Shown here piece by piece: positions 9,639 through 61,900 of a DNA stretch of 64,000 bases (position 1 is the first letter of the stretch; every line of letters starts with the position of its first letter). The position numbers and the translations under genes were made by a program. The notes beneath the pieces were generated by a model. It was not told the DNA's origin and did not search any database. It worked only from the letters and a program-made list of their open reading frames with translations. Origin of the DNA: Convolutriloba macropyga (Eukaryota); the NCBI RefSeq assembly GCF_964194025.1, contig NC_134479.1, positions 17,794,001-17,858,000 of the forward strand, in the 5' to 3' direction.

Positions 9639-9680
<42 letters not shown>

Positions 9681-12600: not shown

Positions 12601-15600
12601 TCGGAAAATTTTATTAAGACAACGAAACAGGAAATAAAGATAAGTATTCTAAATAACCTGAGATCACTTTTTGCGAAATTCTGAAAAAAACATAAAAGAA
12701 CAATACTACCCAAGAAATTGCTGAAATGATTTATCCCAACACTGATTGACCACGAGGCACAAAAGAAAACGAAAGTCAAATAAAAGGCAGAACCACAAAG
12801 ACCTGTAACAACAATATTTCTGCTCCCAGTAATGAAGAAAAACAATTTAAACTTTCACCCTCTATTATAGAAAACTGAGAAAAAACTAAAACTGAAAAAA
12901 CGTATGAAAAAATCAAAATACAGGTCTGATAACAAAAAATCGCAAAGATTTTTAATTTATAAAAAATGATAAAGTTAATTTTCACTTACTGCAGATCAAA
13001 TTAACGTAAAACATATAACTAATTCCTGAAAGATACGGAAAAGCAACACAAAACAAATTGAATTAGGTTTAGTTAAAAGCCCATTAAAAAATGAGGTAAC
13101 TATCATCGGTCGAACAGTTTTAGAGAAACGATTCAAACAAGAAACCGAAGGAGAGAAAACTTTTCATAAATTTGGATTTAAAAAAGCCGGATGCGGCTCA
13201 ATTTGGCCAATTTTTTTCAACATACCGAACGAAATAAGACAGAACTCGAATACAAAGATTAATAAGATCGATTTTTTTTCTTTCTCTCTCTCTTCCTATC
13301 TGCTTTCAACTTTTCAGCGTAATGAATTTTTTCCACTTGCGTCATTGAATTCAAATCTTTGCATCCTTTCTCACTGACATTTCCATTAACAATCCAAGAG
13401 TAATCTTCTTTAATCCCTCTCCGAATCGTTAAGACGAAAACTAATACTGGCCTTATGTTGGAGCTGAGCTTAAGGAGCATGCTTAGGAAATTAGAAGCAT
13501 AAAAATTGTGAAGGGAAAACTCTTTTATATTAGTTGTTCGTTAGTGTGCTTTCTGTTCTCATAACAACTGCTTAGTCATAATAATAGTCACAAAATTGTC
13601 TTATCTTTAGCAATCCGGTTCAATTCGATACTCAAAAACTAAGATAAGCGAATTGTCAGAAGCTGAATTGTAAGGCAACGGTAATATAGCGGATATATCT
13701 TTACAAAGGCGAACAGCAAAATATATCCGGACAGATTTTGAATCACTGAACCAAACTGGGTGTAAAGCTTTCCTCGTCACAACTGATTAGAAGAGCAGCT
13801 GTTCCACCTTTGGTCAGTCAAAAACTTGAATAAAAGCTGTCGAGTGGCATAAAAGACACCGCGAGGGTGGTAGAATAGAGTCGCCTAAACGCTTAGTAAT
13901 TTAACAGAAACTCGCAAAATTCTAAAAACGTTCTATCCATACGTAAGGTTGATACCTACTAGAAGTTAGATCTAATAAAATTCGATTGGTTTTCACTCGA
14001 ATCATGTAAAATAAAAAATAGCCAAAATGAATTTGTAAAAACTAAGCAAAATTAGCTCATTTATCCATGTAACAGATTGTCGCTCTTTATATTAAAATCA
14101 ATAATACATAAACTTATCTGTATCGCTCTATCACTTGTTATCATCATGTGAAAAACGGCGTTTCTTAAACAAGAGTGGAATTTTTTCTGTCCCGCAATTT
14201 GGTATCGAACGTTGTCAAATTCATGGAAAACCTTACAACAAAAAACTTTGTACAATATTGAGTTTTTTTGTATGCTTTCACAAAATCAAGGTGATTTTTT
14301 CGTTATATATTAGTTAATCCTGCTGAATCTAAAGTACAAACTCTTCTTCTTGATGCCAATTTTGGGCACAATTCGACGCTTCAAACCAACTACCCGTCGA
14401 TCATAATTCCGGTCATTATACTTTGATTCCGTGTTCTCATTATCATCTTCGACATCATCGGGTTGTCTTTGATCACCCTCGACAAACGAATTCTCCTCAA
14501 TCGAAGCGTCAAAGTCAAAGATTTCAGGCTTGCTTTGTTTCTTGATTACAAGTTTTTCAACTAAAATTGATCAAAGTTCATCTGATCAAACGTAAATTAA
14601 AAGCTGATCAAACAACATGTAGGCACTGAAGTGCGAATAAATGATCAATTACTTTGAGCTTACATTAACGCGATCTTTTCACAGTTCATCGACCTATATT
14701 TATCATATAATGATTTTAAAATGCCTTTGTTAATGAATGCTATTCTCTGTTAAAGATACATTACAATTCCAAAAAATTTCAAATTAAACCAAAATCTCAT
14801 GTCATTCTCACGAAACTTAGTGAAAAGAAACTCATAGAACTAACCGAAACTTTGTTAATGCTCACGAGAAAATTTAGATTAAAAATTATAAAAAATGTAG
14901 ATTGAAAACTACTTAGCTTCTTTGAGCATGCATCATAATCATGACTGGCAAATTTCAGAAAAAAAACCCGTTTGTCTGAATATCACCTTCATTGTTTCGG
15001 TGACAATGTTGCAGAGGAACTTTAGTTCGGCTGGTTTTTTTTCAGTCAATTTTGGCTGTGGGTGGTGTCATATGCGTGTTATTAGAAAGCAACTAATTGA
15101 GCGTAGAATATTCCAATCCAGTAGGTTGCAAAATTCGCGATTTCTTAGGGACATTTCACCTGTAAGCGGTTTGTACGCATGTGTACGTTCGTGAAAAAGC
15201 AAATTTTGTTTCACAGCAGAATTATTTGTCGGATTTGTAGCATAGACCAGTTTTTAAGCCAGAAAAGACAACAATGAAAACTTTTCGTCACTGCTGTCCA
15301 CGCCGTCATTTTTGTCGACGGTTACAAACCGCGATAACTATCAACATGTCAAGTAAACCGAAATAAAAAAAATCTAATTGGTATTTAGTTACAGAAACGT
15401 TTCCCTCAAAACAAATTGCGTGCATTAAGAAAAAATAGCAGTTTTGCGATAAATCGCGGGTCACAAGAGCTTTTAAACCTCTAGAATTGGGTCTCAAGTA
15501 GTTATTAAGTAGTTACTAAGTTTTAGTCTAATTGAATGCTCAAAATCATGGACAATTGTTCCGTTATCCACCAAAACAAAAGACGGCTTTCATGCTTTTT

Positions 15601-18600
15601 GCGTCTAGTCCACGATTAACACAGCTTTCTCATCGTAAAAAACAAGTTAAATTGAAATAAGAGAAAAACATTTGTCAGTGTTATTCTCGAATACCAAAAA
15701 CAGCCTGTTATTAGCAAATTTAACTTCTACAACGTGATAATGGCCAGCGCTTGAATTTCTTTTTTTTCTAGAGGATCTAATGTATTAGGTTTGCCATTCT
15801 TTAGTCGCAAATTTAAGTTGCAATAGAGCAATTTCTTTTTTCCTTATTTTTTATTCAAACTCCTTTGTTACTAATTGTAATTCTGCGTTATGTCTGGATT
15901 AAATAAAGGCATCAAATTTTTCACACGGAACTAAAATCTAAGATAATTGGAAAACTTCTCTTAAATAAAATATCATTTGTCAACATGATATTGACCAGGT
16001 AGTTAATTGACGATGTTCGCGACTTATTCAGTCTTTATTTTTTTAAAATAGAGGCTAAGTTCCCTACTTTTCAAGTCATTCTATCCAAAGTTCGCCACTT
16101 TTTCAGTTACTCAAAACAGCGCCAACAACTCGTTAGCAATTGGTTTTTAATTTTATTCAGATAAATTTTTTTTTCGATATTTCGAATTGAAGCTTGCGCA
16201 AAATCACATTTTCACAGCGATAAAGAAAGTATAATCTTCTTTCACTACAGCAAAACCGGTGTTGTAGAGTTCCTGAAAAACATTGCAGTTTTGTGGGATC
16301 TGACCGGTTATTTTGAAATCAAGGTCTTCAGAGGAAAAACAGTACCAACGCATGACACTTTATACTTGTCTTGGCTTTGACAAACACCCAAACCTGATAA
16401 GTTAACTGCTTGCTTGAGTTCAAGATTCATCGGGCAGAACAGTACTCTTGAAGTAAGGATCTTCAAGTTTTTCGCGCTGTTGGCCATCAAACTCTTAATG
16501 ATTGAATAACTCAGAGAATGGTCGTTTGACATCCCACGGAATATAACATTTTGTAGGCCCCAATGCAGGGGTGTAAGATAACTATGGCGCATTGAGGGTA
16601 ATCAAAGTAGTCCATATTATCAAAAAAGACAATTATCGTCCTCATATTTTAGGTAAGTTTCATGCAGACAAACGCAGGATCCTATTCCAGCTCCAAGGAC
16701 CTCAAGATCCAAATTATCGTTTTAATTTTTCATCAGGTCTGTCTAATTCTACTGCAGGCAAGAAATCGCAGCATTCGGCAATGAGGTAGAGACCGCGATG
16801 TGTCGGGATTTCGCAGAGAATGTTACAGGATCTAATGTGATTGTCGTCTAAGCCCACCAGGACACCATCGTCTAGGTCCCAGGAATTTAGTTGTAAAATT
16901 GGCGCCGATTCCTGAATGTTCCCTATAATGAGCCAGAATGTAAGAGAAGAAAGCAGCGCTCATAACGGATCGCCTTGTTGGACTCACTGCTAATAACAAT
17001 TGTTACAACCGGCTGTGTTGAGAGTAACAGAAATTTCTAAAAGCCGCAAGAGAAGCATTACTTCAACAAATTTTCTTATTCGCTGCGTTTTACGAAACCG
17101 AAAGCATTGGAAAACTTCTCTTAAGTAAAATATCATTTTTCAACATGATATTGACCAGGTAGTTAATTGACGATGTTCCCGACTTATTCAGTCTTTATTT
17201 TTTTAAATAGAGGCTAAGTTCCCTACTTTTCAAGTCATTCTATCCAAACTTCGCCACTTCAGTTACTCAAAACAGCGCCAACAACTCGTTAGCAATTGGT
17301 TTTAATTTTATTCAGATAATTTTTTTTCGATATTTCGAATTGAAGCTTGCGCAAAATCACATTTTCACAGCGATAAAGAAAGTATAAACTTCTTTCACTA
17401 CAGCAAAACCGGTGTTGTAGAGTTCCTGTAAAACACTGCAGTTTTGTGGGATCTGACCGGTTATTTTGAAATCAAGGTCTTCAGAGGAAAAACAGTACCA
17501 ACGCATGACACTTTATACTTGTCTTGGCCTTGACAAACACCCAAACCTGATAAGTTAACTGCTTGCTTGAGTTCAAGATTCATCGGGCAGAACAGTACTC
17601 TTGAATTAAGGATCTTCAAGTTTTTCGCGCTGTTGGCCATCAAACTCTTAATGATTGATTAACTCAGAGAATGGTCGTTTGACATCCCACGGAATATAAC
17701 ATTTTGTGGGCCCCAATGCAGAGGCGTAAGATAAATATGGCGCATTGAGGGTAATCAAAGTAGTCCTTATTATCAAAACAATTATCGTCCTCATATTTTA
17801 GGTAAGTTTCGTGCAGACAAACGCAGGATCCTATTCCAGCTCCAAGGACCTCAAGATCCGAATTATCGTTTTAATTTTTTATCAGGTCTGTCTAATTCTA
17901 CTGCAGGCAAGAAATCGCAGCGTTCGGCAATGAGGTAGAGACCGCGATGTGTCGGGATTTCGCAGAGAATGTTACAGGATCTAATGAGATTGTCGTCTAA
18001 GCTCACCATCGTCTAGGTCCAAGGAATTTAGTTGTAAATTTGGCGCTGATTCCTGAATTTTCCCTATGAGCCAGAATGTAAGAGAAGAAAGCAGCGGTCA
18101 CAACGGATCGCCTTGTTGGACTCACTGCTAATAACAATTGTTACAACCGGCTGTGTTGAGAGTAACAGAAATTTGTAAAAGCGGCAAGAGAAGCATTACT
18201 TCAGCGAATTTTCTTATTCGCTGCGTTTTACGAAACTGAAAGCATTGCGAAAATCTACTTGCAAAACAGCGCAGGAACTTAACGAGGTGAATATTTTTCA
18301 GACGAAAGCTTAGTCGAATGTATTATGGCTTTCGCAGCACCATTCGCTGGGATACCCAATTGGAGACTTTAAAAAGTATGATGCTTCTGAATTTGCTTCC
18401 TTTGACAAGCATTTAGCTATTAGCCTCCCCGAGATTTTCCCTACTGCAATAGGTCAAAACTACCTCTTTGAACAAGGCTGATATCGCTTCACTGCATAGA
18501 GCTTGTAAGCGAATTCGGAGATTTCACCCCGGTAACCTGTGTTTACTAGCTTAATCAGTACTCTCAGGGTATTTTGCTATTGATGTGATGCGGTACCCAA

Positions 18601-33200: not shown

Positions 33201-36200
33201 ATTAAAACAATTCTACAATTAAGGACTCGAACCTGGCCAGCAACGTCGTACAAGCTCAGTCCAATTCTGGTCTGATGCAACCACACTTTCCGCATCACAT
33301 AATTGAAGAAGTTCATGATTGATATTCTTCCGTAAGGATCACTTTGATATAGCTTAGCAAACACACTGGGCGAAAAGAAGGGTTTGCACTTTTCTCCCGC
33401 CTTGTCTGCTACTTTTGTGAAGTCTTCGTACGTAATCATTTGATCGTCACCGACTCCAAACCCACTCACACTTGAAGGGTTAGAAGAGTAGTTTTGCTCC
33501 AATAAGTACCAAAGATTTTGTAACTCCTCGTTGTCTAAAAATGTATAGCGATTCTATCGTTTTTCTTCTACAAATAAGATCTCCGCATTAATTTCAAAAA
33601 TCTATTAACACATTTTGATCACAAGGATGTGGAAAACTTATTGCAATTATTTGGCATTAGAAAAAGAAAAACAATCACGAAATCAACGAAACTTGCGTCA
33701 ATAGCAAAATTGATCAAAAGGCTATTCACTCGCAATGTTAATGTACAGGGATAACCATAACTCTTCCAATTTAACTTCTAGTGAAAAACAACCATAATTC
33801 AATGGACAATGGTAACGTTTTCGGCTCTCTTGTTGGTCTGAAGAAAATTTTTAAGTCAATAAAAAACACGCGCAAACATTTTGATTATTATCGAACCAAG
33901 TGCCGGAAGTTCATGACCGAAGTTCCCTACATTCATTAACTATGGCCACTTCATCACGGGAAAGATCCTGTCTTTATTTCACAAAGATAATTTGCAACAA
34001 AATGAACAAACTCGACGCTAGCCTTTCCAATGAGAAAGTTGCTATAGTTGATGGATGTAGGGTTACGGCCAAGATTTAATGATTACGCTAGTTAAACTAA
34101 AATTTTTTATCATAGCCTAAAAAACTCATCGTGCCAAACTTTTTTCGCAAAATGACTGCAAATAAATCACTGTATCAGTTCAACATTAAAACAAAATTCT
34201 TCGGTCATACAGCTAACAATTCAGAGATCCTTTAGGAATGCGAAAAAGCAATCACTAATGAATTATTTACGATATTAAAAAAAGAATCCTAATACCAAAT
34301 CAATAAAGGAATATTTCTCGTTACTGCTAAGGGATGGCAACCTAAATATCTTCAGACATAATGACATTCTAAAAATACACAAAACTTCAGTTCCACTTTT
34401 AGGTCTCTTATCGACATCGATACCACAATTTGAGTTAAAGCAACAGCTATTAAAATCTTAAAGTGTACTCTCAAATCAAGACAGACAAAGATTAGGGTCG
34501 AATTAAAATAATTTTCGTTCACATGATCTAGCCAGTGAAAAAGGAGTATCAAGTTAGCTTAAAAATATGCCAGCGAATACGCCAATTAATAATATCGCTG
34601 GGATCTGGTCAAGATGCAATCAATGAACGAAAAAGCGGCACATGCACTTCATTGTCCTGTGGGGTAAAAACATTTGATACTCAACGAAGTGGGGGATTAC
34701 TCCGCAAAACAATTGGTTTGGTAATCAAGACTCCAAAAAACCGATAGATTTTCAATCCACTGGCAAAAATTTATCCCGAAATCAGTAGCCAACACTTTAA
34801 ATATCAGGAATCGGTCAAAAAAGCAGCAAATAGTAATTGATGTTGACAGAACCCCATTCTATCCACTCATCTCCGCATGCACTGGTGGAGCTGGAACATC
34901 AGCTTCAAGACATCTGAGAATATGTTAAAAGTTATCTAGACAGATCAAAAAGACTGTAAATGCTGACACTATAACTTACCTCAGAGCAAAACTTGGCTTT
35001 GTCCTTTTAAGGTCCATACTTTACATCCGAGGCTACAGTACACCAATTCGGTGCGAGTTTACTGACGTTTCATTAACAGTAGTTGTGGAAGAAGTGAGGC
35101 TATTATTTTAATTCATCACCACGTCTTCTTAGAATTTAGCTATCAGATTTGCTGTCATTGAATTTCTTTTCAGTATTCGTCATTTCTCCATATAATTATG
35201 CATCTTCATTTTATAGATAGAGAGATAAAATATTTAAAAACCGATTGCTGCATGTAGAAATAGCTTGAAAGGCACCGGGCCAGGGTTAGAAGGCACCTAG
35301 ATTACTTTCTAAACTACTTTCTATTAAACTGAAATCTCAGAAAACTTATTGTAACTCGAGTTTTACCCAAAGATGCACGCGGATGGTTCTGTTGTATTCA
35401 ACAATATCGTCTCAGACAACGCAAATTCATCACCAAAACTTTGTATGTCCAACTGTTTTTAATTGCAACTTATTAGTGATGGTAGACTATATTGGAAACC
35501 ATTCTTCCAATCAACCATTTGTCAGCGGAGGCCTAGCTATACCCATCTGACGTTCTCCTTTATGCCAGCTATCTATTAGAGCAATTTTGGGGGCGCTAAC
35601 TATTTTGGTTTTCTCAGGCTTTTGTTTTAAAGATTTTAAGTCAGGATGCTCGAAAGAGTTCTTTTGGCAATTTTGAGTCTATCTCCAGAAATAAAAGTTT
35701 TGTGCAGCAAATGTTTTATTCACAAGTCATCTGAGCTGTAGCTATCGTTCTCTCTGTTCTGAGAGTGGCAATTAGATCAGAGCACAACATTTGATGTTAA
35801 ATATTTGCACGAGATAAAGTAAGAACATTGTACAATTTAATCTTTATAATCCCGGATGTTTATGGGCGTGTGAATGAGTTAAACTTTACTAACAATGGGG
35901 TAAATGCACGCGCATGGATTGTACAAATATGTTTAAGCATGGCACGAATGTATGAGGGGCATGACACTCCCACTTCTTCAGAAAAAAAATTAATGTCAAG
36001 TTTTCAATTTTCAGTTTTCAATGTCTTCTGATCTTAATTTATTCGCAATGAACTGTGATTCTGACGAGGCGCAGGCTGTCAGTTCTGTGTGCGAATCATC
36101 ATCCAGCGAGAAACACCAGAGAAATGTTGTCTGGGCGAGAGGGCTATGGAATTTTGTGTCAGCTGGAAGTGTGTCGTCTGTTCCAGAGGTGACCCGTGAG

Positions 36201-39200
36201 GAAATTGAGGGTCAGAGTATGGGTGTTGGCATTCTTCGCGGGGAGCCTCTGATGGAGTTCAGCAGCCCCGAGATGCAAGTAAGAATCTTGAAGTATGTGT
36301 AGAGGTAGTAATCGTGTCGTAGTTGTTGTTCACTGCATGAATTGTGAATGCATGTTGTGCTGTTTGGTTTTTACAGCAGTTGGCAACGGGATTGAGGACG
36401 CCATTGGATTTCGAAGGACGCTTCGCCAGCAACGAGAAGATCAGGCCAGATTGGGCTTTTCAGTCATGGATGTGCGAGGGTGTGTATCCTCGTGACATCT
36501 TAAGTTACCACCCGAGGCCACATCGCACTGAAAACTTGTCAGGCTTCTTCAACTTCCGTGTGTTTGGGGGCGAACGTCTGTATGATCCTAGCCTGCTCAT
36601 TGCAAACTCGTTCACGTACACAGGCCCTCATGTAGATTCTAAGCCCACGCTGCCCACACTTGCTGTTCTCCTCTTTGGCGTGAAGCTCTGGATTATATGT
36701 CCAGACATCAAGACAGACACGGCAGCGTTCATTAGAGGGCTGAATTTGAAAGAAATGTGCAGCTTCCTCAAAGTAATTGCGCAATTAGTTCGGTTTTGAC
36801 TGTTTTTTGTTCCTCTGCTGACACTATGAGAGCATAGTGCGGTTGATGTTCTTGATTGTCAAATGTCATGCTTGTTCAGGGGCCAGCAGGGAAAGGATTC
36901 ATATTCGTGATTCAACGGCCTGGTGACACGCTGTATCTGCGAGAGATGGCTGGGCACGCTGTCCTCACTGTCAATGGTCTCCCTGGCATCGACTGTGGGA
37001 TCATTGAAGAGGGCTCGTGTCTGCTATCGTCACCAGTGGTCACGGATTTGTCTCCAGAGAGGTTGCACGGGTTAAGTTGGATCGTTCCGTCTGGTAGTCG
37101 TGCTGGAGGGCACGATTATCAGCATCTGAAGAGGAAGCACAAGGAGGATCCCGTGAACAACCCGGCACCCCCTGCTCGTAAGAGGAAGCAGAAGAAGAAG
37201 GCCCGGTTTGGAAGAACTCAGCGCCCAAAAAGTTAGCTCAATGACAAGTGGTATCAAATTTTACTGCACTTTTTTTCCCAAATAGTATTGAATAAATAGC
37301 GAAAAATTGAAAACTGAATAATACGAGAAATGCGGTAATACCCATATAGCACAAAGCACAATGTTTACGGTCTGTATATTAAATTTGAGTTGCGTAGCTC
37401 AAATAACAAGATGAGGCTTTTGTTTTTCGTATTTTAAGAAATTTTATAAATAGCACACAGATCCGATAAAAGGTAAAATTAAACATAATATAGTGCACAG
37501 AAGCACGTGAAAGAGGGCATATAGCACGAAGGTTGTTATGATAAATAACTGTGTTAAAAATTACAGCGCTAACTTTTATAGTTAAGCCAGGCTTTTGTTT
37601 TAAAATACACTGTTTTTTTTAATAAAGTTAAAAAAAATAACACGAAATTAAACTTTTTGGTTCCTTCATGAAGTCCAATCAGCACAAAATTACGCATTTA
37701 ACACAAAGCAATAGCTGAGGAGTGTGTATAGAGAAAATGAGAGCTTTTGAACAAAGGGCACTACCAGGCTTTTGTTTTAACTGCAGCAAACTTTTTATAA
37801 ATATCACATTCAGAGGGTAATTGTAATCGATTACAACATAAGTACTAAGCTTAGCCACTCATATGACGTGAGCAGGCACATGTAGGAGCTACGCTGAGAT
37901 TTATAGAGAGATTGAGCCAATAGAGTTGTCAGGCTTTTGTATTAAAGAAGCATTAAAAATAAAGCAACAATAAAACTTGTTCGTCAAATAAAACATAAAT
38001 TAATTTAAAAATATTTGCGTTTAAGATTTTGTTTTACCCATATGACATTAAGCACATAAACTCGGATTTTTTCAAATCATTGAAATATTTTTTATTTTTT
38101 CAAATCATTGAAATATTTTTTATTTTAGAGCCAACAAGCAGCACACAGCTTCTAGACGAGGGAAACAGCAGCGAATAGCTGCAAGCAGAAGGGTGGGGAG
38201 AGGAGGGGGACAGGGGGGAGAAACGAAGCATCGTCATTAAGTTTTAGTAGGTATATCCACTTTATTTATACTTGAAAAATTTTCTGGTTATTAAATTGAG
38301 AAGTAGCACACATATTGAATCCGCGATATTCTAACATATTTGTAGCAATTATTCGTTTCGGTAGTTTTGGTGGACGAATTGTATAATAACTTTCATACAG
38401 CTCCAGAAATAAATGTATTTTTTTTCTGTTTTTTTTTCAATTTATATGAGTATTTTTTTTCTTTTCACAATTATATAATTAAATCTTTCAAGACAAAATC
38501 TTTTATAATTGAGTATAGGACTGAGAGTAGCACAGGTATAATAAATTGTTTGTGAGTGAAAAACACCCAGAATCAAATCAGTAACTAATGGTTTATGAAG
38601 ATTTTCAGATCTATAAAAATGATGTCAAAGATATTGTTTGTTGCATTATTTGCTATGATTGTTACGAGTGTTGATATTAACAAGTGCATTTTATTGAGCG
38701 AAGAGAACAATTTTGGGACAAATTTGAAGTGGTTGTGTTGTGATGGAGTACAATTTTTGATCGAGGATGGAAAAATTACAGCAAAAGCAGGGGCATGCGA
38801 AAATTCCCAAAATAAAGTGAAGCCTTCAGCTGGCAGCATGTTAATGATAGCCAGTTTTGCAATTGTGCTACAATTACAGTTGTGTCATTAATATAAGAGT
38901 AGTAGGAAAGTGGTGAAGGAAATCAGTTTAATGAGAGCAAGTAGATAGAGTTGAGTAAAGTGAACAAAACTTGAAAATTTCAAAAACAAAGAAACTTTTA
39001 GTTTTATTTACCATACGTTGAATCTGTAAATGAATTAAAGTTTGGAGAAGCCTGATCTATATATTTTTCATTAAGCACGCGACTCATAAATCACTTGAGG
39101 ATAAATGGGGGGCGGAACATTCGATTGCTCTGACTCTGGACAAGATGCAGATTGAGAATCCGCTGTATCAACAGTAGTTGTTGAAGGGCTAAAAAATGGA

Positions 39201-42200
39201 TTTGGTAAATTTAAATCACGTCGTCGGAAAATTAATCCCTTTTCGCGAATACGATGATTAGGGTGTTGTCGCAAGTAGTCGTAATCTTCATCAGAAACTA
39301 CCAAAATGGGCTGTGATTAAATAGTGTGGGCAGAAATAGTTAGGCGAAATGAGAAACGTCTATGAACTTGAATGTACCGGTGAAAAAGATAACTCAAAAA
39401 GTGTAGACCGAAAGATAACATCAAAAAGTGTAGACCGAAAGACAAAATAAATGTAGTGATCGCAAACACAATATAAGGTGTCCAGTGCACCGTCTCATCG
39501 AATTTTGCTGTTATCTGAGGATGAAATTGTTTCATGCGATTAACAATAGGTTCAGTAACTTTTTCGAGTTCTTTATAATTACGTCTCTCATGCTCAGGAA
39601 TGTGAATTAGTTGGAGATGAACCTCCTCTACTAATTGTACTCGAGCAATGTCAACATCAGACATTTGTGGCATAGAATCAAGAGATGGAAGTTGATTGAA
39701 TAAAAAGCTAAGCGGCGTTGGTAAATTAATGTCGAGTCTAACTGGTGTTGTATACTGACAGGTAGACCAATCTGATCTTAAATGTATATTAGGTCCTTCT
39801 AATTCCTGTCCACACGCTAAAATAATAATGCAAACTTGGCACCCTTGTCTATGTTCTTTACTTAGGGGATGAATAGAATTCGGAGATCTAGTCGAGAGCA
39901 GAAAGTTTGGCGTTGCACTAGTAATCAGCCATCTACCATGGCCTAACGATTGAGCCTTTTCTTTGATAGGTAATTGAATTGATCTGATGCTACAAACTTC
40001 GAGTGCGGATAGAGTGTCTTTAAAAAGCAAAGTAGCCAGACATGAGTCCTTCGATTTTTCCATCGCAAAAGAAGAGAAACAAATTGAGTAAAGCTTAGAG
40101 CCTATACATTCTTGTAAGTCAAATTCAGTCAAAAGTGCAGCTTCACTTTGCGTTTCTGTTACTGCAATGTAAGGCGTTTCTAAAACCCAAATGGTTGCTC
40201 TTGTTGACTCTTTAGTTGGCATTGGAACTGGAATAGCGTGAAATACATCTAAAGCTGTAGAGCCTGATGAAAAAGGTATAGATAATGTTAACATAAGACC
40301 AGAGTCGACACTAACAACACTTGTAACAAGTCGTGTCTCATAATAAGACATCACATGTTCTATTGGAATTGAAAGTGTTAGTCGATCTCTGGTGTATTGA
40401 GTTTCTAGCAAAACTTGTTGTAAAATTCGAATAAAAATTTTGCGAGGTATAAGAGAAAGTGGCAGCATACCATCTGCAATGGCAGTAGTCGAGCTCAAAA
40501 TGTTCATTCTAAAAGCAAAAAGAGCAGATCTATATGTGCGCAGATTGGTGTATACAGACGTTAAAATAGAGTTCAACAGTCCAATGTGGTGATTGACTTC
40601 TTCACGGATATAAAGAAATTGGTCACAATTTCGCATGTAGTTAATGCTGCTAGCCAATGTGTCAAACTGTGTCTGTAAAATTTTAACGTTAGATCTCTGG
40701 ACTTCAGCTAGATGTTCTGTGGATTTACGCAGGTCTCGGAGTTCCTTTCCTACTACAAAAAATTTCTCGTTCGTGGCGTTTTGGACACTAGACCATTCTT
40801 GCTGTAATTGGTTCATGTGGTTGATGGAGTCTACAATAGCTTTTCTATTCTGCTTACCAATCTGATTGCATCCGCCAAACATTCGTCCTAATGTACAGGA
40901 TAGTTTGTCTTTGAATCCCATGCCCAGACCACAGATTCCAGCTGCAGCGCCTGCTAACAGGGCAACGGGAATGCCTCTTCGTTCTCGATGTTGATGCTCT
41001 GTAACTTTTGAGGGGAACAGCTCTGAGTTCTTGCTGAAGTTTCACCAAGTCGTTTTCGGCTCTTTCTTTCTCTGCAATGACTTCGGTAAGAACCCATTGT
41101 GAAGTGAAGTTGGTGGCAGTGATGTTACTGTAGTCAAGTTGGCATCCCTTGTTGGGGTGATTCCAGAGTGTGTCCATTCTTTGTGCGATTTCAGAGATAA
41201 ATTTATCAATTGTTAGGTCAAAATTTGGAAAAGACAAAACAAATTGAATCTGTTCAAATTTTTCAGCCAATAGTATTTTTCGATGGTAATTAAAAACAAT
41301 GCCATTATTTTCTGAGTTTCCTGCTATCAGAAAAGGAAAGATTATTAATTGAACAAGCGAAATTGAATACAAGTTGTAACCAAAGTTGGCCATTCTTTAG
41401 TTGAAATTTGTTTTCTTAAGTTCGCCAAATGTTAGTACTGCTCAATTCGGCTGATTTTTGGATAAATGATCTAAATATGTGAATATTTTGGTTTGTATTC
41501 TGAGTGTGTTGAACTTTATCAGAAAAGGTTATGTTTGAACTGACGGGAGTGATATCCAAAGTTTAGTCAAATTAACTTTTATCAAATGTTACTAGATTTG
41601 TTTGCTGTTTCAGTGGAGCACAGGAAGGACATAGTTTGCGTACTTAGATAATCTAAACAATTAGTTTGCGAATCGGTCAGAGTTCGATGAGCTGGCTTGA
41701 TAGCGTTTTGGTACGTTCACCTCTCGGCGAAGTTCATATGCCCTGTTAGTTCCAACGCGTGGATCTTGATCTGGTGGAACTAATGAGCGGCACCTTCTTT
41801 TTGATTTATTTGGCGGATCCAAAGGAACCGCTTGTGAAAACACGCTGGTCGGTTGAGTAGTGGCCCGTGTAACGTAATTTGGATAGTTTCGGGTATCAAT
41901 GAATTCGGCACTCTGAGTAGTTGGTTGGAAGTGTTGGTTTCCTTCTACCACAAATTGCTCCTCAGTATTTTTATACTCTTCGTGACAAAAGCCTGGCCTG
42001 TTTTCCTGGTTTTGGGTCTGTAGAGGTCGCAAAATGGGCTGCTCATCATCTGATTGTTGTAATATGGGGTCTGAATTTCGTCCATCAGCAACTAAATTTG
42101 TGTTATTATCATTTTCACGTCGGTTTATATTTAATTGCAGTTCCGGATTATTTGCAAAGTATGTTGGAGCATTAAAACGTGATCTCACACCAAATTGAAT

Positions 42201-45200
42201 AATTGAGGAACCATTAGATGGTCCCACTATGATTGGCGAGTGGTGGGAGGCTAGATCTTTTAGGGTTTGGTCAAAAATTTGAGGTTCAGAGATTATTTTT
42301 GTGATTGGGTCGGCTTTAAAGATTTTGGAGTCAATCTCTTTCAAATCTTCAAACTCGTATTTTGGTTGAATTGGACGCAAACGAATACGATGTACGAGTT
42401 GTGTATCGTTGGTATTAACTTTGCGAACTATATAGTTTGAATTTGTTAAAACTTGCTCAACGCAATAGAGCGGTAACCATTTGGTTACTGATTTAGCAGC
42501 AAAGTCTTTTGTACTACTTATTTTTGGGTTCATTAATAGGCAGTACGAATACAATACTAGAGGTTTGGAAAGAGCTTTTTTGTCATAGAAACGACGATAT
42601 TTGTTGTATGCAACTATGGAATTATCCCTAGCACCAGCAAAGAGCGTGTTCATACGGTCTTGACTTTGTTGTAAAAAGTCTTGAGTTGGTTGCGCTTTTT
42701 TGACAGTTAAATTATTGAATCGCAAGTCAAGGGGCTTTGTCGGCTGACGGCCATGAAAGAGCAGGGTCGGGGGGCATCCTATTGAAGAATTATAAGTGGT
42801 GTTATAGACAAAAGCTGCGATATCAACATAATGATGCCAGTCTTTTACAATTATATCTTCATAAATATGCAAAATTCGTTTTACTATAGCATGGCTACGT
42901 TCAACTGCACCAATTGTTTGAGGATGTTTTACAGATGCCAATTTTAGTTCAACTTCTAGCAATTCACATAAAGTTTTCATCATCTTTGACGTGAAAACTG
43001 AGCCCAAATCACAAAATGGTTGATGGAAGGTATGCGTGCTGCATAAAAATTTGAAGCAAAAATCTGGCAACGTTTTCCGCCGATGCATTTTTCATTGGGA
43101 TTAGAAAAAGATAACGGCTGAAGATATCCATCGCAGAGAGTATTTGTGTATAACCTCCGGAGGGATTAAGTTTGCCTACAATATCTACTTCCATCAAATC
43201 TCCCGGAAAATATTGTTCTGACGCAATTGGTAAAAGAGGTGTTTTTAGGCTGTTTTGCTGAACTGATTTGATTTGCAAACAAGATGAACAATTGGACACA
43301 TACTCTAAAAGAGTTTCTGTAAATTCAGGAAAGTAAAACCTCTGGCGAAACTGGTTTGCAGTTTCGGCTGTTCCAATGTGTCCCATAAATTTGCTATTGT
43401 GAATTCTAAACAGAATCTCATGACGAAGGTGCTTAGGAAGAACCAACTGACGTATAAAATTCTGTCCGGTGTTATCGAAAATTTGCGATAAAACACATTA
43501 TTATACAATTCCAATCGGTTCAACTGTTTATTATATTTTTGCAATTCGGTATTAGAGTAAGTTGTAACTGGTTTCACTTTTCTCTTGATCCAATTGATCA
43601 GTTCTAATATTGCCATCTTTTTGTTGCTCCTCAAAAAGATTCAAGGACTGGTTGTTATTGCTGAGATCAAACTCATCTAAGGGGTTAGCTTCTGCGAGTG
43701 AATTTAAGGGGAAGTCAAAAGAAGGCTCAAACACTTCAATCAAATCAGAATCTGGTTCCTCTAAATAACACTGTAAAGCTGTAAGACTATTGTCTGGAAT
43801 TTTTGGTCGGAATTCGACAGCAACGTCTTTAAGTTGAATTCTGGTTTCCAATTTTAGTTGGAGCTTTGTAGCAGGATTAATATAGATCCTAGACAAATAA
43901 TCTACGGCTACGTTAGCTTTACCTGGGACATGCCCCAAAACAAAATTGAAATTAAGGACATGATCAACTGCATTCCATAAGGGAGTTGGAACTGTCTTTG
44001 CCTGGAAAAAACTAGTCAAACTTTTGTTGTCAGTCAACACTAAGATAGGTTTTTTAGTCCCCCATAAGATGTGCGCAAAATTATCAAAAGCAAAATGAAC
44101 TCCCAGAAACTCTTTTGCATAAATTGATAATTTAAGTTCCGTTGCATTAAAGATTTTAGAACCAAAAGCCACGGGAGCGTATTGCTTCTGTTCTAGTCCT
44201 TCCTGGTTCAGTACATAGTCCTCTACCATAAGGACGTATCCTGCGGAATAATAGCTTGCGTCGGACAATATTACATATAGTAGATCTGTTTTTGGTGGGC
44301 GAAGGGTTATTTTACAAGCATTGTTTAGCATTTCTATTAGTTCACTCATCGATTTTCGGTGCTCATCCGTAATTTCAAAATTGTTGTTACATTTTAGTAG
44401 TTTGTAAAATGGGAGCAGTCTCTCACTGAGGTTCGGTAAATAGGTTCTAAAGTATTGAAAGAAACCAACAAGTCTTTTGAGTTGCTTGAAGTTTTTTGGC
44501 ATTTTGAGATTTGATAAAAATTTATCTATTTTTGCCTTTATGGGGGATGTTCCTTCCGATGAAATTGTTCTACCTAAAAATGTGATCTCGGGGACACCAA
44601 TTTCACATTTTCCCATTGATAACTTAAGTCCTGAATTTCTAATACACGTAAAGATAGCTTTCAAATTTCCGTAAAGACCCTGAAAATCAATTGCGCCTGT
44701 TCCCAAATCATCCACGTACTGGAAACATTGGTCATTAGCTATACATGAATCAAGGTACTTTCTCATGAAAGAGCTGAAGGCACTGACTGATCTACTTAGT
44801 CCCTGTGCTAACCTAGTGTACGCAAAGGTTCGGGAGGCAAAATTGAAGGCTAATAACTGGACAGATAATGGGTCAGACATCTTAACCGCATAATACGCCT
44901 GACTACAATCTAGTTTTGCGAAAATTCGTTTGCCCGCTAAATGTGCTCCGACATCTTCCATAGTTGAAATCGGGAAATTGTTAGAGTTGTAGTCATGGCG
45001 TATTAAGTGATTAATACGCCTAAGGTCAACTAATAGTCGGAGTTTTCCGGACGGTTTGTGTTGCGCAAAAAGAGGGCTCGAGTGTTTGGAATAGGGCAGT
45101 GTAGTGATGATTCCAAAATACTGCATTATAGCTTAATCAATGAGGATTTCCTCGCGCAAGTGAATTGCAGTGGGTGGGCTCTGAGTATAAACTGGTCGCT

Positions 45201-48200
45201 GTGTTTCAGGTGTGAGCTTAATCTTAAACTGGTCATTTCCACCGACATCATAATTGTGCCGCGCAAAGACATCATGAAAAGAAACTAAAAGTTCTTCAAT
45301 TTGTTCCTTTTCTTGTTCAGTTAAAATTGAATTGTCCCACCGAAATTTTGAAAGACATTTTTTCCTAGACTCAGAATCTTTTGTTGGATCAAGCTTTTCT
45401 TGTTCTTTCAAAAATTTGAGTGTCTCAAATATTCTTTTGTGAATACCGGTTAATGCATCTGGGTCCTCACAATTTTCAGGTGTAGGAAACCAAAAGCAGT
45501 CTGTTGGAAATGGTAAACTTTGCTGGGAATTGTCAACAAGCTCGTTTATGTTGCTGCCATCTATATTTAAGAGCGCTGGGTCAATTGGTTGTAAATACTT
45601 TGCTTGCTTAGGCGTTAAAATTGTAAATCGAGCAACTACTGCTCCCTTTGGTACTGAAACTACATTTGGGGTTACATTTAAGAAAGCTATTGGCGTTTTT
45701 GAAGATTGGATTTTTGAAAAGGAGCTGGTTAAACAAAGACCTGTTGATCTTTCAAAACGTGGGTTAGGATCTACAATTCCAATTGTGTTGTCGGCTAAAA
45801 TATTGTCGAGAAAACAATCTATTGTTTCCTGACTATTTGGGGAAAATGTCCAATTTTTGGATTGTTTTGAGAACGTATTTATGTTTTTCAAATTTCGTTC
45901 TCGTTTTGCCATTACGCATTGTCATTTCTGAAATTTGCAGAAATTTCAGGCAGGTGTAGTTTTTGTGATGCTACGTCAATTAGATTTCTATTGTTTTTAT
46001 AGAATGGAAGACCTAAAACTGGGTTATTCATTTTGGGCAACAACAAAAACTTTTCTGTGGATACTTGATTAGCGAGAGTGAAGGTGATTTCAACTTCACC
46101 TAGGGTTTTTGCATGGGTTGCGTTCGCATTTAATACTCTGCGGTGCAGATGATTTGATTTTCTCAAGCATGGACGGTGTAAGAGCACTAGAGAAAGCACC
46201 AGAGTCCACTAAAAACTTTAAGGAAAGTGATTTAAACGTTAGGGGAACAAAAAACAGATTTGAGGAAAAAGGATCATAACAGCAGTTGGAAAAGGGGGTT
46301 GCAAATGTGGCTGACCTAGTTTTTTTGCTGATCAAATGGCAGTTGCTAATTTCTTTCAGGTTGAGGTTTGGACCAGCAGTACTGCACTGTGTGTCCATAC
46401 TTTCCACAATTGCGGCAGTATCTCTGGTTTTTGATGGGCATTGTATTTGACCAGTGTCCTGCGTATGCTGTTGGATAGCCTGATGCTGGGTAACCTTGTG
46501 CTTGCACACCCGCTTCATCAGTTGTCGCTGACTGTTGGCCGTGGGACTGATAGCCATAAGCCTTGTAGACTGGCTGCTGTTGTCCTGTTGTTATATAGCC
46601 CGGTCTTTGAGAGCTGATTGCATTGTGACTCTGATTATTTTGATGCCAGCTTCTTTGTTGGAAAGGTTGTTGCATCTGCCAGTTTTTGTTAAACTGGTAG
46701 GGCGGATTAAACCGCTGTCTTGGGTAAAACCCACCTCTGCCTCGATAGAAATGGTGCGGCTGTCTAAAATTACTATAAGGAGCATTAGAGTTTGCATTTT
46801 GAATTTTATGCTCTTCCAGTGACTTCGCTAATTTGTCTGTTGTTTCTTTCAGCTGTTTGATTTTTATTTAAGGCACTCATACTCTGAATAAGTGAGGTCA
46901 TTTGTGAGGCTGAGATTTCACTAAATGCTGTTCCGACATCATCTTCAGGGTATTGCTCTTCAAGCATCGCCCTTCTAGAAGCCCGTTCACATAAGTCTTC
47001 TACAGTGGTGTGGTCAGGAAGAGTGAGTAGATACTTTTTAAGCTTATTTGGCAAACCATTAATAAAGTTCTCCTTAACTCTTCTGACTCGCTCATTAGAA
47101 CGATCTTCAGCAGCAACTGCTGGCACGCCAGCAGCGGCAGCTCGCGCAGCAATATTTGGGAAAGCAAGACTAGCTAAGCGTTGCAACTCTGTCAAAAAAT
47201 CATGAATGCTTTCCTCTGATTGCTTCAGTTTTCTATTTTGGAATTGGAGTTTATAAAGTTCAATTCTATCAGGGTTTACATACCGGTTTCTCAATGCGTC
47301 TAGTGCTTGATCCAAGTCTTCACGTATGGCTTCTGTAAGCTGGTCATAAAAAACTAAGGCATTACCTTTAAGATGAAGATGCAAGTAGCGATGTTGTTGA
47401 TCCTCGTCGATTGCTGCCAATCCAATGCAACTTCGAAGTTGTCGTTCAAATTGAGTAAAATTATCTTTCTCTGATCCCGAAAAGGGCGTCAAATTGAGAA
47501 AAGGTTGCAACTGAGCCATAGTTTACAACAAGAGATTGCAGAGTTTTACGATTTAGTTGTCATTTCCAATGGGAGTCATATTTAGTTTTAAGAGAAAAAA
47601 TCTCTTGACTCAAACTTGCCAAAAACACTCCTGTCACCATGTCAGCGGAGGCCTAGCTATACCCATGTGACGTTCTCCTTTATTCCAGCTATCTATTAGA
47701 GCAATTTTGGGGGCGCTAACTATTTTGGCTTTCTCAGGCTTTTGTTATAAAGATTTTAGGTCAGGATGCTCGAAAGAGTTCTTTTGGCAATTTTGAGTCT
47801 ATCTCCAGAAATAAAAGTTTTGTGCAGCAAATGTTTTATTCACAAGTCATCTGAGCTGTAGCTATCGTTCTCTCTGTTCTGAGAGTGGTAATTAGATCAG
47901 AGCACAACATTTGATGTTAAATATTTGCACGAGATAAAGTAAGAGCATTGTACAATTTAATCTTTATAATCCCGGATGTTTATGGGCGTGTGAATGAGTT
48001 AAACTTTACTAACAATGGGGTAAATGCACGCGCATGGATTGTACAAATATGTTTAGGTATGGCACGAATGTATGAGGGGCATGACACAATTTCCTACCTT
48101 CTCCGCTAAAATAGGAAAACGTGTCCTAAAAATCATGAATGAAACAAACGGAAGCTTCGGACTTGAATGAAAAATATCTTGTACTGAAGAACGTTTCAAC

Positions 48201-58952: not shown

Positions 58953-61900
58953 TCTCTGAAATGATTGCAATTGCTGTAGAGATTGCTAATTGCTGAAAAG
59001 AATTCAAACTATTGCACTTGCTTCCATTATAACTTATTTTATAATTAATCGTGTGAATGTTTTCTTCAATCCATTCTTCGATACTCTGTCCTCTCCTGTT
59101 GCATGGCTGGGCTTTTAGTTATGACACCCCAATTTTTGGCAACTAAGTAGCGGTGATATCTTGAAAAAAGTAAACACAAGAAATGCCATTGTACTTGGTA
59201 AACTGTCATTTGTGAAGCCAATTAAAGTGACCACCAATTTGGCGGCTCTTTTCATTTTTACATGAGTGACGCATAACCATCGGATATAATCATCAAGTTT
59301 AGTAGAACAGTTTAATCAACAAATGACCCTGTAGTAGTAGTAGTAGTAGTAGTAGTTCAGGCTTCTGCAATGCACGGGTTGAAGCACCCTTGTTGATCGT
59401 TATAAATGAGATATTTTCGAAATGGGGTTACAGTTTTTGCACAGGCAGCAAATTCTCCAAGTGCACATGTCAATTTCGTTAAAACTTCTAAAAAAGAATT
59501 TCCAATAAATGTCGCTGATCCGATATTTTATATTTTTGTTGTCTGTAAGGTCTGTCTGTTTGTTGACAATATTATAGAGATAGGCTGTTCTCGACCAGAA
59601 ATTTTCGTCGCTTTTGAATAATCGTTTTTTCGTAAGTTTGATTTCACCTTTCGCTCCTTGTCTCGTCCGATTATTGTTGTTGAAATGTATAAACTTTTCT
59701 ATGGCAATGTTGTATTTATTGTTTATGAGATCACATAGTAGTAATAAGCTGTGAAGTTCGAAGTAAAAAGACAGAGGTAGAATTTTTAGTTTGATTAAAC
59801 GCTCCTTATATGTGAGAGAAGAACCTATTATCCATTTCGTCGCACTTTTTTGGATTCTTTCGATGAGTACTAGATCGCATTTAGACGGATACCACTCTTG
59901 GCAGGCGTAGGATATAATTGGTACAATGTAACCCGTGTATGCGTTTAACTTAACTTGAGGGAGAGTTCTGTGGTGAAGATTTCTTCTGAGGTACCAAAGT
60001 GCTTTGAGTTTTGGAGGCTCGTGTGCTTGCTTTTTGATGCCAAGTGAGGTTATCACAAACTTGTATTCCGAGATCTTTTTGATGAGACGAGATGTTGACA
60101 GTTTCATTTTTTATTGTAAAGAGTGACTTTTTCTTGAAACAGAGGATCTTGCATTTGTTTTCATGGAGGCGCATTTCGTTGTTATTGCACCATTCATTTA
60201 ATTTCTGGAGGTCAGTTTGAAGTTCATGTTTGTTATTAGAGAGCAATTTGTAATCATCTGCATAACCGTAGGTTTGACTGTATTCGATTTTTTGTGGTAA
60301 ATCATTTATGTAGACGAGAAAAAGTAGTGGCCCCAGGATTGAACCTTGCGGTACGCCGCTAGTGACGTCACGAAGGCTCGACGTTGAGGTTCCAATGCGA
60401 ACACGTTGTTTTCTGTCGTCACAGTAGTTGGCTATTAATCTGAGCGCTTTTCCCCCGATCCCTGATTCCGACAGTTTTGCAACAACGCGGTGGTGGGGTA
60501 CTGTATCAAACGCTTTCTGGAAATCTAGGTAGAAAACGAAAAGTTCATCATGTGCAATTGAGTCGACTTCTTTGTACAGTTGGTCTAGAATGCATAACAT
60601 TTGAATAATTGCTGAACGTTGAGGCCGAAAACCAAACTGGGAATCGTGAAGTGTTCCTTTAACGTGCTCATAGAGTTTGTTGAAAATAAGTTTCTCGAAA
60701 GCTTTTGAGAGGCAACATAGGCAATTAATTGGTCTATACATTTTGATTGCGGTTTTATCGCCCTCTTTGTGTATTGGCGTTATGTCACTTTGTTTCCAAT
60801 ATGCTGGAAATTTACCTTTGTTAATGAATGTTTGAAAAAGTAGAAGTAAGGATCTGCTTATTGTTTTTGATAGATTTTTCAGAAACAGGTTACTTATATC
60901 ATCAGGGCCGTTGGCTTTACTAGTATCAAGTTTGTTTAGTATACTTTCAATTTATTTTTCTGAAATATCAAAGCGATTAAGATCTTTTTCTTCAAAATTG
61001 AACTGGTTCTCAACATTTGATATTTTTGAATTGAAAACACTCTGGAAAAATAAATTGAACAACTCGGCTTTCTCTTCATTGGTGTTAGCAGTTTGTTCAT
61101 TTAGGTGCATCTCGCTTGGGAATGGTGTGACTTTTTTAATTGATCGTAAATATTTTTGAATAACGCTGAATTGGCGTGTTGCGAAAATCTCGCTTTCATA
61201 GATGACTTGATCCTTTTTACAAAGTGTGTTGACTTTTTCTTCGAGACAATCTGTTTTGTTTAGTGTGCTTGGAGCAGGACTTGGATGGGCAATTGCTTTT
61301 CGTTTCAAAGTTGATAGTTTTTTCATTTCATGGGATGTGCTTTTTGACACCCACGGGGGGAGCTGTGATCTGTGCTGAGTTACTCTTGCGACATTTTGAT
61401 CGAAAAGGCGATTGAACCATTCATACCATTGTTTAAGAAGTTCGTCAACGTTACTGTAACAATAGGGGTTAAATGGGTTTTTTGAGATGTTGCAGTTGAA
61501 TTTAATCCAATCTATTCTTTTGTAAGCGTATTTTGGTCTGCTGCGATCGGTCGCTTGATCGTAGTTGCATTCGTATCGTGTTATGTAGGCGTAATGATCT
61601 GAGCATTTTTTGTTGTTGAGGGCATAGTTATTACTAATTTTGGTTTCGATTTTCGAATTGATCCAAAATTGTGATTCGTTTGTTAGGAAGACATCTAGCT
61701 GTTTTTTGTACCCCAAAAAGTCAGTGAAGTTTAGCATTTGTTCAAAATTTTCATCTACGAAATAGTTGAGCCAGGTATTGTCAAGTTCATCTGGTGACGA
61801 CATTTGTTTCCAGTCAGTGGTTGAGAAGTTGAGATCTCCTGTAATGATGATTGATTTTGGCTTTGTTTTCTTCTCTAAAAACTTTAGCGTTTGTGTGAGG

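Follow-up and report, generated by a model that had tools for sequence, protein, structure and literature searches.

Antisense intron-bearing gene of env-bearing LTR retroelements, predicted to encode a JmjC-like oxygenase and exchanged between elements as a cassette

In a 64,000-nt stretch of the Convolutriloba macropyga genome (hereafter the window, whose positions are used throughout), an env-bearing LTR element carries a three-exon gene on its opposite strand. This gene is a conserved feature of the element lineage rather than a one-off capture, is under purifying selection between subfamilies and is swapped between element backbones as a cassette, an observation that is new here. On balance, we favor the reading that the env-bearing LTR elements of this lineage carry their own antisense gene for a nuclear Fe(II)/2-oxoglutarate (2OG)-type oxygenase, which would favor element expression.

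Gene model and host element

Joining the plus-strand exons 36021-36278, 36377-36772 and 36880-37236 (258, 396 and 357 nt, each divisible by 3) gives an uninterrupted frame of 336 codons and a terminal stop. On the other strand, a minus-strand gag-PR-RT-RNaseH-IN-env element spans 35520-48086, and the features of both are as follows.

35520-35966, minus strand: 3' LTR, 447 bp, TG...CA, about 98% identical to 47640-48086
35967-35979, minus strand: polypurine tract directly next to the 3' LTR, with GAAGAAGTGGGAG on the element strand (read from the sequence)
36021-36278, plus strand: exon 1, 86 codons from the ATG; homologous first exons, ending in Q followed by GT, in L002, L004, L005, L006 and L007
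36279-36376, plus strand: intron 1, 98 nt, GT-AG, phase 0, GTAAGA...TTTTTACAG, position common to the relatives
36377-36772, plus strand: exon 2, 132 codons; contains H-x-D, whose His codon is at 36629, and G-x-K-x-W
36773-36879, plus strand: intron 2, 107 nt, GT-AG, phase 0, GTAATT...TTGTTCAG
36880-37236, plus strand: exon 3, 118 codons and the stop codon; contains QRPGD, the distal His (at codon 36955) and a basic tail whose last motif is FGR
37291-37296, plus strand: AATAAA, 55 nt 3' of the stop codon
37297-39070, no strand: AT-rich spacer separating the gene from env, without a convincing ORF
39071-41393, minus strand: env-like gene, broken by one frame change and one premature stop relative to intact relatives
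41661-46557, minus strand: pol with PR, RT, RNase H and integrase; compared with the 1300-aa pol ORF of L012, it is broken by about 6 stops in frame and 1-3 frame changes
46806-47519, minus strand: gag, a weak Retrotrans_gag match (E 1.6e-4, below the Pfam cut-off), 36-65% identical to the gag regions of L002 and L003
47622-47639, minus strand: primer-binding-site-like sequence, starting TGG and adjoining the 5' LTR
47640-48086, minus strand: 5' LTR, 447 bp, pairing with 35520-35966

The frame with its two phase-0 GT-AG introns had been proposed in a sequence-only reading of the window, and every coordinate was reproduced. Homologues were found at eleven loci from two ENA assemblies; apart from these assemblies, the family occurs in a single sequencing run. 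The exon ends are common to ten other loci (exon 1 ends in Q followed by GT, and exon 2 stops just before GT), which shows that the gene model is more than chance. The second intron measures about 70-107 nt in the relatives, at an unchanged codon position. GC content is 50-55% in the exons, 38-40% in the introns and 30-37% in the flanks. The LTR and exon coordinates also bear out that the gene lies antisense within the LTR-bounded unit, with its ATG 54 nt from the edge of the 3' LTR. The introns are kept in all copies; being in antisense orientation in the genomic RNA, they cannot be spliced out and so pass on through reverse transcription. A transcript of the gene would begin in the 3' LTR or shortly inside it, at a putative promoter, and end at the AATAAA.

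The two LTRs match at 443/452 positions in a local alignment, in line with the earlier figure of about 2% divergence, and have TG...CA ends. The element ends are fixed by a paralogous repeat in which the insertion site, at about 54414-54420, is empty, and the target duplication is 5 bp with one mismatch. Pfam matches to Asp_protease_2, RVT_1, RT_RNaseH, Integrase_H2C2 and rve follow each other in this order on the minus strand. Judged by its LTR features and the pol domain order PR-RT-RNaseH-IN, the element is classed as a Ty3/Gypsy-type (Metaviridae-like) element. The env-like ORF, a candidate gene for a membrane fusion glycoprotein, stands third, after IN; its product would have a hydrophobic leader at the N-terminus, a basic R-x-K-R-like site, a heptad-like stretch and a membrane span near the C-terminus. 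No family match to this ORF came from Pfam or PDB sequence searches; it is 50-65% identical to the env ORFs of L002-L005, and omega for env between L005 and L004/L006 is 0.3-0.5. The related copy L009 has nothing that matches part of the spacer (37806-39070). With pol and env both broken, the window element is defective.

Predicted fold and activity of the product

Across the family, the positions of the two introns are kept, as are H-x-D, G-x-K-x-W, QRPG(D/E), the distal His and the basic tail. Alignments A1 and A2, in which relatives are 30-45% identical, show no change in the His and Asp of H-x-D or in the distal His, and a few near-duplicate copies in alignment A4 have single departures from them. 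Among the relatives, the His, Asp, Gly and Trp of the exon 2 motifs are invariant and the Lys of G-x-K-x-W is nearly so, with few exceptions among the copies (P0002 and P0011 have Gln). The two triad His residues are about 73 residues apart. The motifs named in the earlier reading have thus held for H-x-D, G-x-K-x-W and the distal His, but not for the Thr of T-x-x-H-x-D, three residues before the His, which is Arg in most relatives.

The JmjC identity itself is suggested by structure comparison but not by sequence searches. In Pfam at E<=10, neither the exon pieces nor the read-through relative P0008 nor 23 family members (A7) gave any match, including to the JmjC (PF02373), Cupin_8 (PF13621) and Cupin_4 (PF08007) profiles, and phmmer and hmmsearch of PDB with family sequences were likewise empty. 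An AlphaFold2 model of the relative P0014, which has no exon 1 and an unspliced, read-through intron and so differs from the window protein, is of low confidence (pLDDT 42, pTM 0.45, no residue above 70) and has a beta-rich core. In a Foldseek search of PDB with this model, JmjC enzymes make up 48/50 best matches (top E 0.024, prob 0.92), among them JMJ703, JMJD6, UTY/UTX/KDM6B, KDM7A, KDM4 and JMJ13/14, with E-values all >=0.02, TM about 0.2 and a 3Di+AA score that may partly reflect the motif. Fold matches in BFVD are mixed, with JmjC and cupin proteins recurring among the named ones. By hhalign, the family H-x-D was aligned to G-P-H-x-D of E. coli RoxA (P 0.04, probability 1.3%).

A JmjC-like fold and metal site are probable. 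The 336-aa product would most likely be a very divergent Fe(II)/2OG oxygenase with a JmjC-like double-stranded beta-helix, in which the invariant H-x-D and the distal His would hold the metal and the nearly invariant Lys of G-x-K-x-W would hold 2OG. The conserved basic tail may bring it into the nucleus, where it would modify chromatin or another nuclear protein in favor of element expression, a putative anti-silencing role.

It is unlikely, in our view, that the gene is real and selected and its product has another fold or is a non-catalytic cupin-like protein, such as a binding or adaptor protein, with an H-x-D...H unrelated to 2OG chemistry. The lack of any Pfam or PDB sequence match at any threshold, the low confidence of the P0014 model and the hhalign probability would all fit such a protein; however, the deeply invariant residues are exactly the triad, joined by a Lys whose spacing after H-x-D matches that expected for JmjC/FIH-type enzymes, and the Foldseek matches are nearly all JmjC enzymes, not proteins with a different beta-rich fold.

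We give similarly little weight to a JmjC-type oxygenase with a non-histone target (for instance a ribosomal protein, a factor of splicing or RNA export, or a protein of the element itself), like the hydroxylases JMJD6, FIH and the ribosomal oxygenases. JmjC-only small proteins are mostly hydroxylases, no PHD, Tudor or chromo reader domain was found by Pfam in any exon, and JMJD6 takes ranks 2, 3, 6, 7, 11 and 19 of the Foldseek matches, whereas KDM4/5/6/7 demethylases account for most of these matches, at E-values too weak for ranking JmjC subfamilies. The assignment to a KDM2/KDM7/JMJD6 type in the sequence-only reading could not be sustained, since the subfamily cannot be made out, and nothing separates a chromatin from a non-histone target.

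Spread, selection and cassette exchange in the element lineage

In 10 of the 11 loci the gene has the identical position and orientation beside related env/pol. The plus-strand gene followed by minus-strand env/IN/RT is seen in L002-L007, L009, L011 and L012; L001 consists of an LTR plus the gene alone, without env or pol, and the LTR-proximal part of L002 lies in a rearranged tandem array. The env sequences of the carrier lineages are only about 50% identical to each other. No cellular homologue of the gene was found among 1.84 billion representatives.

Between subfamilies the gene evolves under purifying selection. The window copy and L009 give an omega of 0.30 (dS 0.42, dN 0.125; 282 codons), and L005 and L012 give 0.13 (pS 0.59, pN 0.13; 250 codons). 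For L005 against L004 and L006, the gene shows pS of 0.76-0.79 and pN of 0.27. The near-twin L001 gives a dN/dS of 0.78 against the window copy; together with the broken pol and env, this suggests that this particular gene copy may be decaying. Because the gene is a feature of the lineage and under purifying selection, a one-off secondary insertion, which the earlier reading had left open, is not the case. Although the bare LTR plus gene at L001, its dN/dS and the rearranged array at L002 would suit a passenger, either a host gene fragment captured once to no benefit of the element or a host gene family using a solo LTR as promoter, that view is largely refuted and highly improbable in the face of the shared place and orientation in elements with such different env, the omega values between subfamilies, the retention of both introns and catalytic-type residues, and the lack of a cellular homologue among 1.84 billion representatives.

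The gene is also far more diverged than the elements that carry it. Between the compared elements, identities are 95-98% (nt) in the LTR, 92-97% (aa) in env and 91-97% (aa) in pol, and only 53-82% (aa) in the gene cassette. Synonymous sites within the cassette are near-saturated despite LTR/env/pol backbones that are 91-98% identical. The identity troughs end sharply at the start and stop codons of the cassette. A diverged gene with such sharp borders on near-identical LTR, env and pol indicates cassette exchange. Editing as the source of the divergence was ruled out by the substitution spectrum in the cassette (99 transitions and 86 transversions). The exchange presumably comes about by template switching in the conserved flanks when RNAs are packaged together. 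The pattern, diverged and purified gene versions on backbones otherwise nearly identical, is a strong and unusual signal, and points to recombination-driven diversity at one accessory locus, as expected at a host-parasite interface.

Relation to known systems and significance

The earlier statement that no LTR lineage with JmjC cargo has been described agrees with our literature search, in which no description of such cargo in an LTR element was found. The predicted protein shares with JmjC oxygenases (JMJD6, KDM4/5/6/7, FIH and E. coli RoxA) the H-x-D...H order, a Lys, in G-x-K-x-W, predicted to lie on the strand after H-x-D and, in the low-confidence model of a relative, a beta-rich core, but it is small and retroelement-encoded and is without reader domains or profile-level similarity. 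The HBZ gene of HTLV-1 and the antisense extra ORFs of Tat/Ogre-type plant Ty3/gypsy elements lie on the strand opposite to gag-pol-env, adjoining the 3' LTR, and encode bZIP-type regulators or proteins of unknown function. They are likewise spliced, presumably 3' LTR-driven and of a nuclear-type product; unlike the predicted product here, theirs are not oxygenase-like.

The Fe(II)/2OG enzymes with a double-stranded beta-helix also include the TET/JBP family. Genes for TET/JBP dioxygenases are carried by DNA transposons of fungi (Kyakuja-Dileera-Zisupton and others), which are thus likewise mobile elements with a dioxygenase able to act on epigenetic marks, although the enzyme family (acting on DNA bases), the element class and the fungal hosts differ (PMC12730594). 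In bdelloid rotifers, LTR retrotransposons carry ORF3 enzymes (GDSL esterase/lipase and DEDDy exonuclease), and TelKA has a paramyxovirus-F-like env (PMC5408684). There too, extra enzyme genes are spread across diverse env-bearing or env-less LTR elements with modular cargo exchange; however, no oxygenase or cupin cargo is mentioned, and the ORF3s seem to be sense-strand and intronless, as they are placed downstream of pol and introns are never mentioned, whereas the gene described here is antisense and intron-bearing (PMC5408684). VANC of Arabidopsis VANDAL transposons has a demonstrated anti-silencing effect on its own family and diversifies fast between related elements (PMC5735166, PMC10398659). 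A VANC-like mode may be possible for the gene described here, by analogy, but VANC, encoded by a DNA transposon, binds DNA sequence-specifically and is not an enzyme, unlike the predicted oxygenase (PMC5735166, PMC10398659).

LTR retroelements were known already to gain env and, rarely, other enzymes, and DNA transposons to carry TET/JBP dioxygenases or anti-silencing proteins. Neither Pfam nor sequence searches of PDB detect the family, so that it would widen the sequence space known for the fold if the fold is confirmed. More tentatively, a JmjC-type demethylase/hydroxylase of the element might strip repressive marks, or disable a silencing factor, at the element's own copies, with several ancient versions being kept and shuffled between backbones because the host keeps adapting; if true, this rather unlikely scenario would describe a retroelement counter-defence enzyme with cassette-like diversity. 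Should the favored reading of a nuclear oxygenase be true, a chromatin- or protein-modifying enzyme would join the retroelement toolkit, and active erasure of host silencing marks by retroelements would become directly testable.

The inner element and its antisense gene

The LTRs of the inner element, a minus-strand retroelement at 35520-48086, were delimited by direct-repeat search and pairwise alignment, and the pair is identical at 443 of 452 positions of the local alignment. Read on the minus strand, the internal region has a PBS-like site starting with TGG after the 5' LTR and a purine tract (GAAGAAGTGGGAG) ahead of the 3' LTR. The element interrupts one copy of a 1.15-kb repeat (34797-35519 and 48087-48517), and because the other copy (53695-54846) retains the empty site, the ends of the element are fixed and a 5-bp duplication with one mismatch is evident.

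Features of the inner element and its plus-strand gene (window positions)
35520-35966, minus strand: 3' LTR, 447 bp, TG...CA
36021-36278, plus strand: exon 1, length divisible by three
36377-36772, plus strand: exon 2, length divisible by three
36880-37236, plus strand: exon 3, length divisible by three
47640-48086, minus strand: 5' LTR, 447 bp, TG...CA

Minus-strand ORFs for gag (a weak assignment), aspartic protease, RT, RNase H and integrase are arranged in the order of Ty3/Gypsy elements. The integrase is followed by an env-like frame that encodes a hydrophobic leader, a cleavage-like site of basic residues, a stretch resembling heptad repeats and a membrane span at the C-terminus, and for which Pfam and PDB sequence searches gave no family match. 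Compared with the long ORFs of relatives, pol in the window (41661-46557) bears about six in-frame stops and one to three frame changes, and env bears one frame change and one premature stop. If the decay had occurred after insertion, the stops in pol would exceed the number expected from the LTR divergence of about 2%, which suggests that the window copy was derived from an already defective template. The plus-strand gene shows no frame or stop break in the window, and the window sequence is identical to that of contig ctg32041_55x_l in ENA assembly ERZ25071359.

The three exons of this gene join into 336 stop-free codons when the window is translated. The two introns (98 and 107 nt) have GT...AG ends and pyrimidine-rich 3' ends as read from the sequence, and GC content is 50-55% in the exons but drops to 38-40% across the introns and 30-37% across the flanks. 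The exon-joined model is justified because relatives have both introns too: exon 1 ends as ...Q/GT (slash at the junction) across every lineage, and exon 2 in relatives stops directly ahead of a GT that opens an intron of about 70-107 nt. The three ORFs, the two His codons (36629 and 36955) and the AATAAA (37291) noted in the sequence-only reading all lie at those positions in the window. Moreover, 54 nt separate the ATG from the inner edge of the 3' LTR; the gene is therefore within the reverse-transcribed unit, in antisense orientation, where that reading had placed it. A pyrimidine-rich stretch with a terminal CAG (ttttcaattttcag) is found upstream of the ATG at 35990-36020. Because numerous upstream ATGs are present deeper in the LTR, a non-coding 5' exon located in the LTR is possible.

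Other repeats are also found in the window. The two copies of the 1.15-kb direct repeat, the left one of which is split by the inner element, are about 96-97% identical, and because a fragment with an endonuclease-reverse-transcriptase domain (50578-51123) sits between them, the arrangement may represent a duplication or an older element bounded by the repeats. At 55625-63426, two units of about 5.73 kb with 99-100% identity lie in tandem and contain endonuclease/RT ORFs of non-LTR type, and an ORF at 55083-56342 has an Exo_endo_phos_2 domain fused to DUF5641. Tandem duplications are located at 9911-11567 (units of about 935 bp, 76-85% identical) and at 15946-18252 (units of about 1150 bp, 95-98% identical).

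Distribution and selective constraint of the gene

A complete HMMER scan with exon 2 against 1.84 billion representatives found five proteins, all of them short ORF calls, and word-indexed profile searches using the exon-2 and exon-3 alignments brought the total up to 26 homologous pieces, none of which contains a Pfam domain. Homologues came only from ENA assemblies ERZ25071359 and ERZ25074608 and from Logan run SRR14219478. Among the 11 readable loci, 10 (the window itself, recovered again as L008, and L002-L007, L009, L011 and L012) have the homologue on the plus strand followed by related minus-strand env, integrase and RT, with env identity to the window of 48-63% in the distant loci. The possibility of a one-off secondary insertion, which the sequence-only reading had raised against its own proposal, is thus not borne out. 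The remaining locus, L001, is an LTR-plus-gene fragment of 97% identity with the window.

Several of these loci show further rearrangements or neighboring genes. The 97% identity in L001 (9197-11357) covers a window-like LTR, the gene, which has one frameshift, and about 470 bp more, and neither env nor pol follows; the locus represents a truncated element or else a fragment made up of LTR and gene. Locus L002 bears three tandem 2.64-kb units (5254-13250), each composed of upstream sequence, exon 1, intron 1 and exon 2, and exon 3 and the element env are reached only by the final unit; the array is a rearranged LTR-proximal part. In L003, a Drosha-type gene with Helical_CED_Drosha and two RNase III domains (1-4343, minus strand) is located about 5 kb from the element and is called as a single uninterrupted product of 1983 residues, which would be unusually intron-poor if real; its presence hints that ERZ25074608 derives from an animal host. 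Scanning the window and four loci for Rfam families and tRNAs gave no match.

The dN/dS comparison among copies, which had been proposed as a check, points to purifying constraint between the more diverged pairs. The window and L009, members of a subfamily with 77-90% identity, differ with dS of 0.42 and dN of 0.125 (omega = 0.30, 282 codons), and L005 and L012 from the second assembly give pS of 0.59 and pN of 0.13 (omega = 0.13, 250 codons). The window and L001 show 24 differences with dN/dS of 0.78, which looks like drift after insertion. Relatives are 30-45% identical in the exon-wise alignments, and the positions that stay fixed there include His and Asp of H-x-D, Gly and Trp of G-x-K-x-W (where the Lys is almost invariant), the QRPG stretch and, within G-H-x-V-L-T, the distal His; relatives also share a basic tail bearing an FGR motif. 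These results show that the elements carry a conserved, selected, antisense and intron-bearing accessory gene adjoining the 3' LTR. That the gene is a mere passenger is largely excluded by its position, its conservation and the omega values.

Exchange of the accessory gene as a module

Five elements (L004, L005, L006, L011 and L012) constitute one young family. In comparison with L005, the other members are 95-98% identical in the LTR and, at the protein level, 92-97% in env and 91-97% in pol, whereas for the gene itself identity to L005 is only 64-82% in exon 2 and 53-62% in exon 3. Identity per 100 nt in this family is 92-100% in the LTR, falls to 47-78% from the start to the stop codon, introns included, and returns to 85-99% directly beyond. 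The low-identity trough has sharp borders and is located at about 9700-10750 in L005. Synonymous sites in the cassette (the gene as a unit) are near or at saturation (pS = 0.59-0.79), while dS in env of the same pairs is 0.08-0.11, and the single backbone of these five elements bears no fewer than four strongly diverged cassette types. The accessory gene is exchanged as a module.

The simplest interpretation is relocation of deeply diverged gene versions among backbones, via recombination in the conserved flanks. Alternatively, the backbone could have been homogenised around old cassette types instead of the cassettes having moved. Two other sources of the cassette divergence were ruled out. 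Positive selection by point mutation is excluded because omega is far under 1 (0.13), with synonymous divergence equal to or greater than non-synonymous, and hypermutation or editing left no signature, given 99 transitions versus 86 transversions. The usual mechanism of recombination in retroelements is template switching between co-packaged RNAs, by which the relocation of cassettes may have proceeded. In the window's own subfamily (window versus L009), the trough is absent.

Affinity and possible role of the product

The sequence-only reading described the product as a JmjC oxygenase of KDM2/KDM7/JMJD6 type. In place of the joined 336-aa protein, the searches used ORFs found in relatives in which translation continues across an in-frame intron 2 (P0008, P0014 and P0015). 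No JmjC or cupin match was found in Pfam at E≤10 for the three exon pieces, the read-through relative P0008 or all 23 members of the family protein alignment (A7), and phmmer and hmmsearch against PDB, run with the pieces, with P0008 and with profiles of exon 2, exon 3 and the whole family, gave only chance-level matches. An AlphaFold2 model was built for P0014, a 248-aa ORF of L005 type that reads through intron 2 and lacks exon 1, with the 23-row A7 alignment; the model is poor (pLDDT 42, pTM 0.45), yet beta-rich near the motifs. Foldseek of this model against PDB gave nothing at E≤0.001, and JmjC enzymes account for 48 of the 50 best matches (best E = 0.024, probability 0.92), among them rice JMJ703, JMJD6, UTY/UTX/KDM6B, JMJ13/14, KDM7A and KDM4. 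Against BFVD the list is mixed, with several JmjC and cupin entries recurring. When the family was aligned by hhalign with E. coli RoxA, a JmjC-type ribosomal oxygenase (sequence from NC_000913.3), one local match covering the H-x-D stretch only was obtained with weak statistics (P = 0.04, probability 1.3%), placing the family H-x-D onto G-P-H-x-D of RoxA.

The Lys is about 17 residues past the first His, the two His are about 73 residues apart, and no Arg follows the distal His, a combination that we take to fit the JmjC/FIH type and not other 2OG oxygenases. The JmjC claim is supported by the conserved triad residues and, indirectly, by the fold matches of a relative's model, but not by any Pfam or PDB sequence match; no subfamily can be assigned, and the Thr of the proposed T-x-x-H-x-D is Arg in most relatives. 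On the model and these residues, the family protein is likely to contain a JmjC-like metal-binding DSBH, and the gene product is a probable Fe(II)/2OG-type oxygenase. Rival readings are a hydroxylase acting on a non-histone target and a non-enzymatic protein.

Antisense spliced genes adjoining the 3' LTR occur in deltaretroviruses and in some plant elements. Extra enzyme genes (GDSL, DEDDy) are carried by rotifer LTR elements (PMC5408684), TET/JBP dioxygenase cargo is known in fungal DNA transposons (PMC12730594), and anti-silencing is encoded by VANDAL transposons through VANC (PMC5735166). The rotifer genes lie downstream of pol, and introns are unmentioned in that paper (PMC5408684), whereas the gene here is antisense and intron-bearing. 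No description of an LTR element carrying a JmjC-like gene turned up in a literature search, in agreement with the sequence-only reading. In the L005 family, conservation of the 54-nt spacer between the LTR and the ATG equals that of the LTR, and the gene may be transcribed from the LTR or from this spacer. The product could then enter the nucleus via its basic tail and would favour the element by acting on chromatin or on a nuclear protein.
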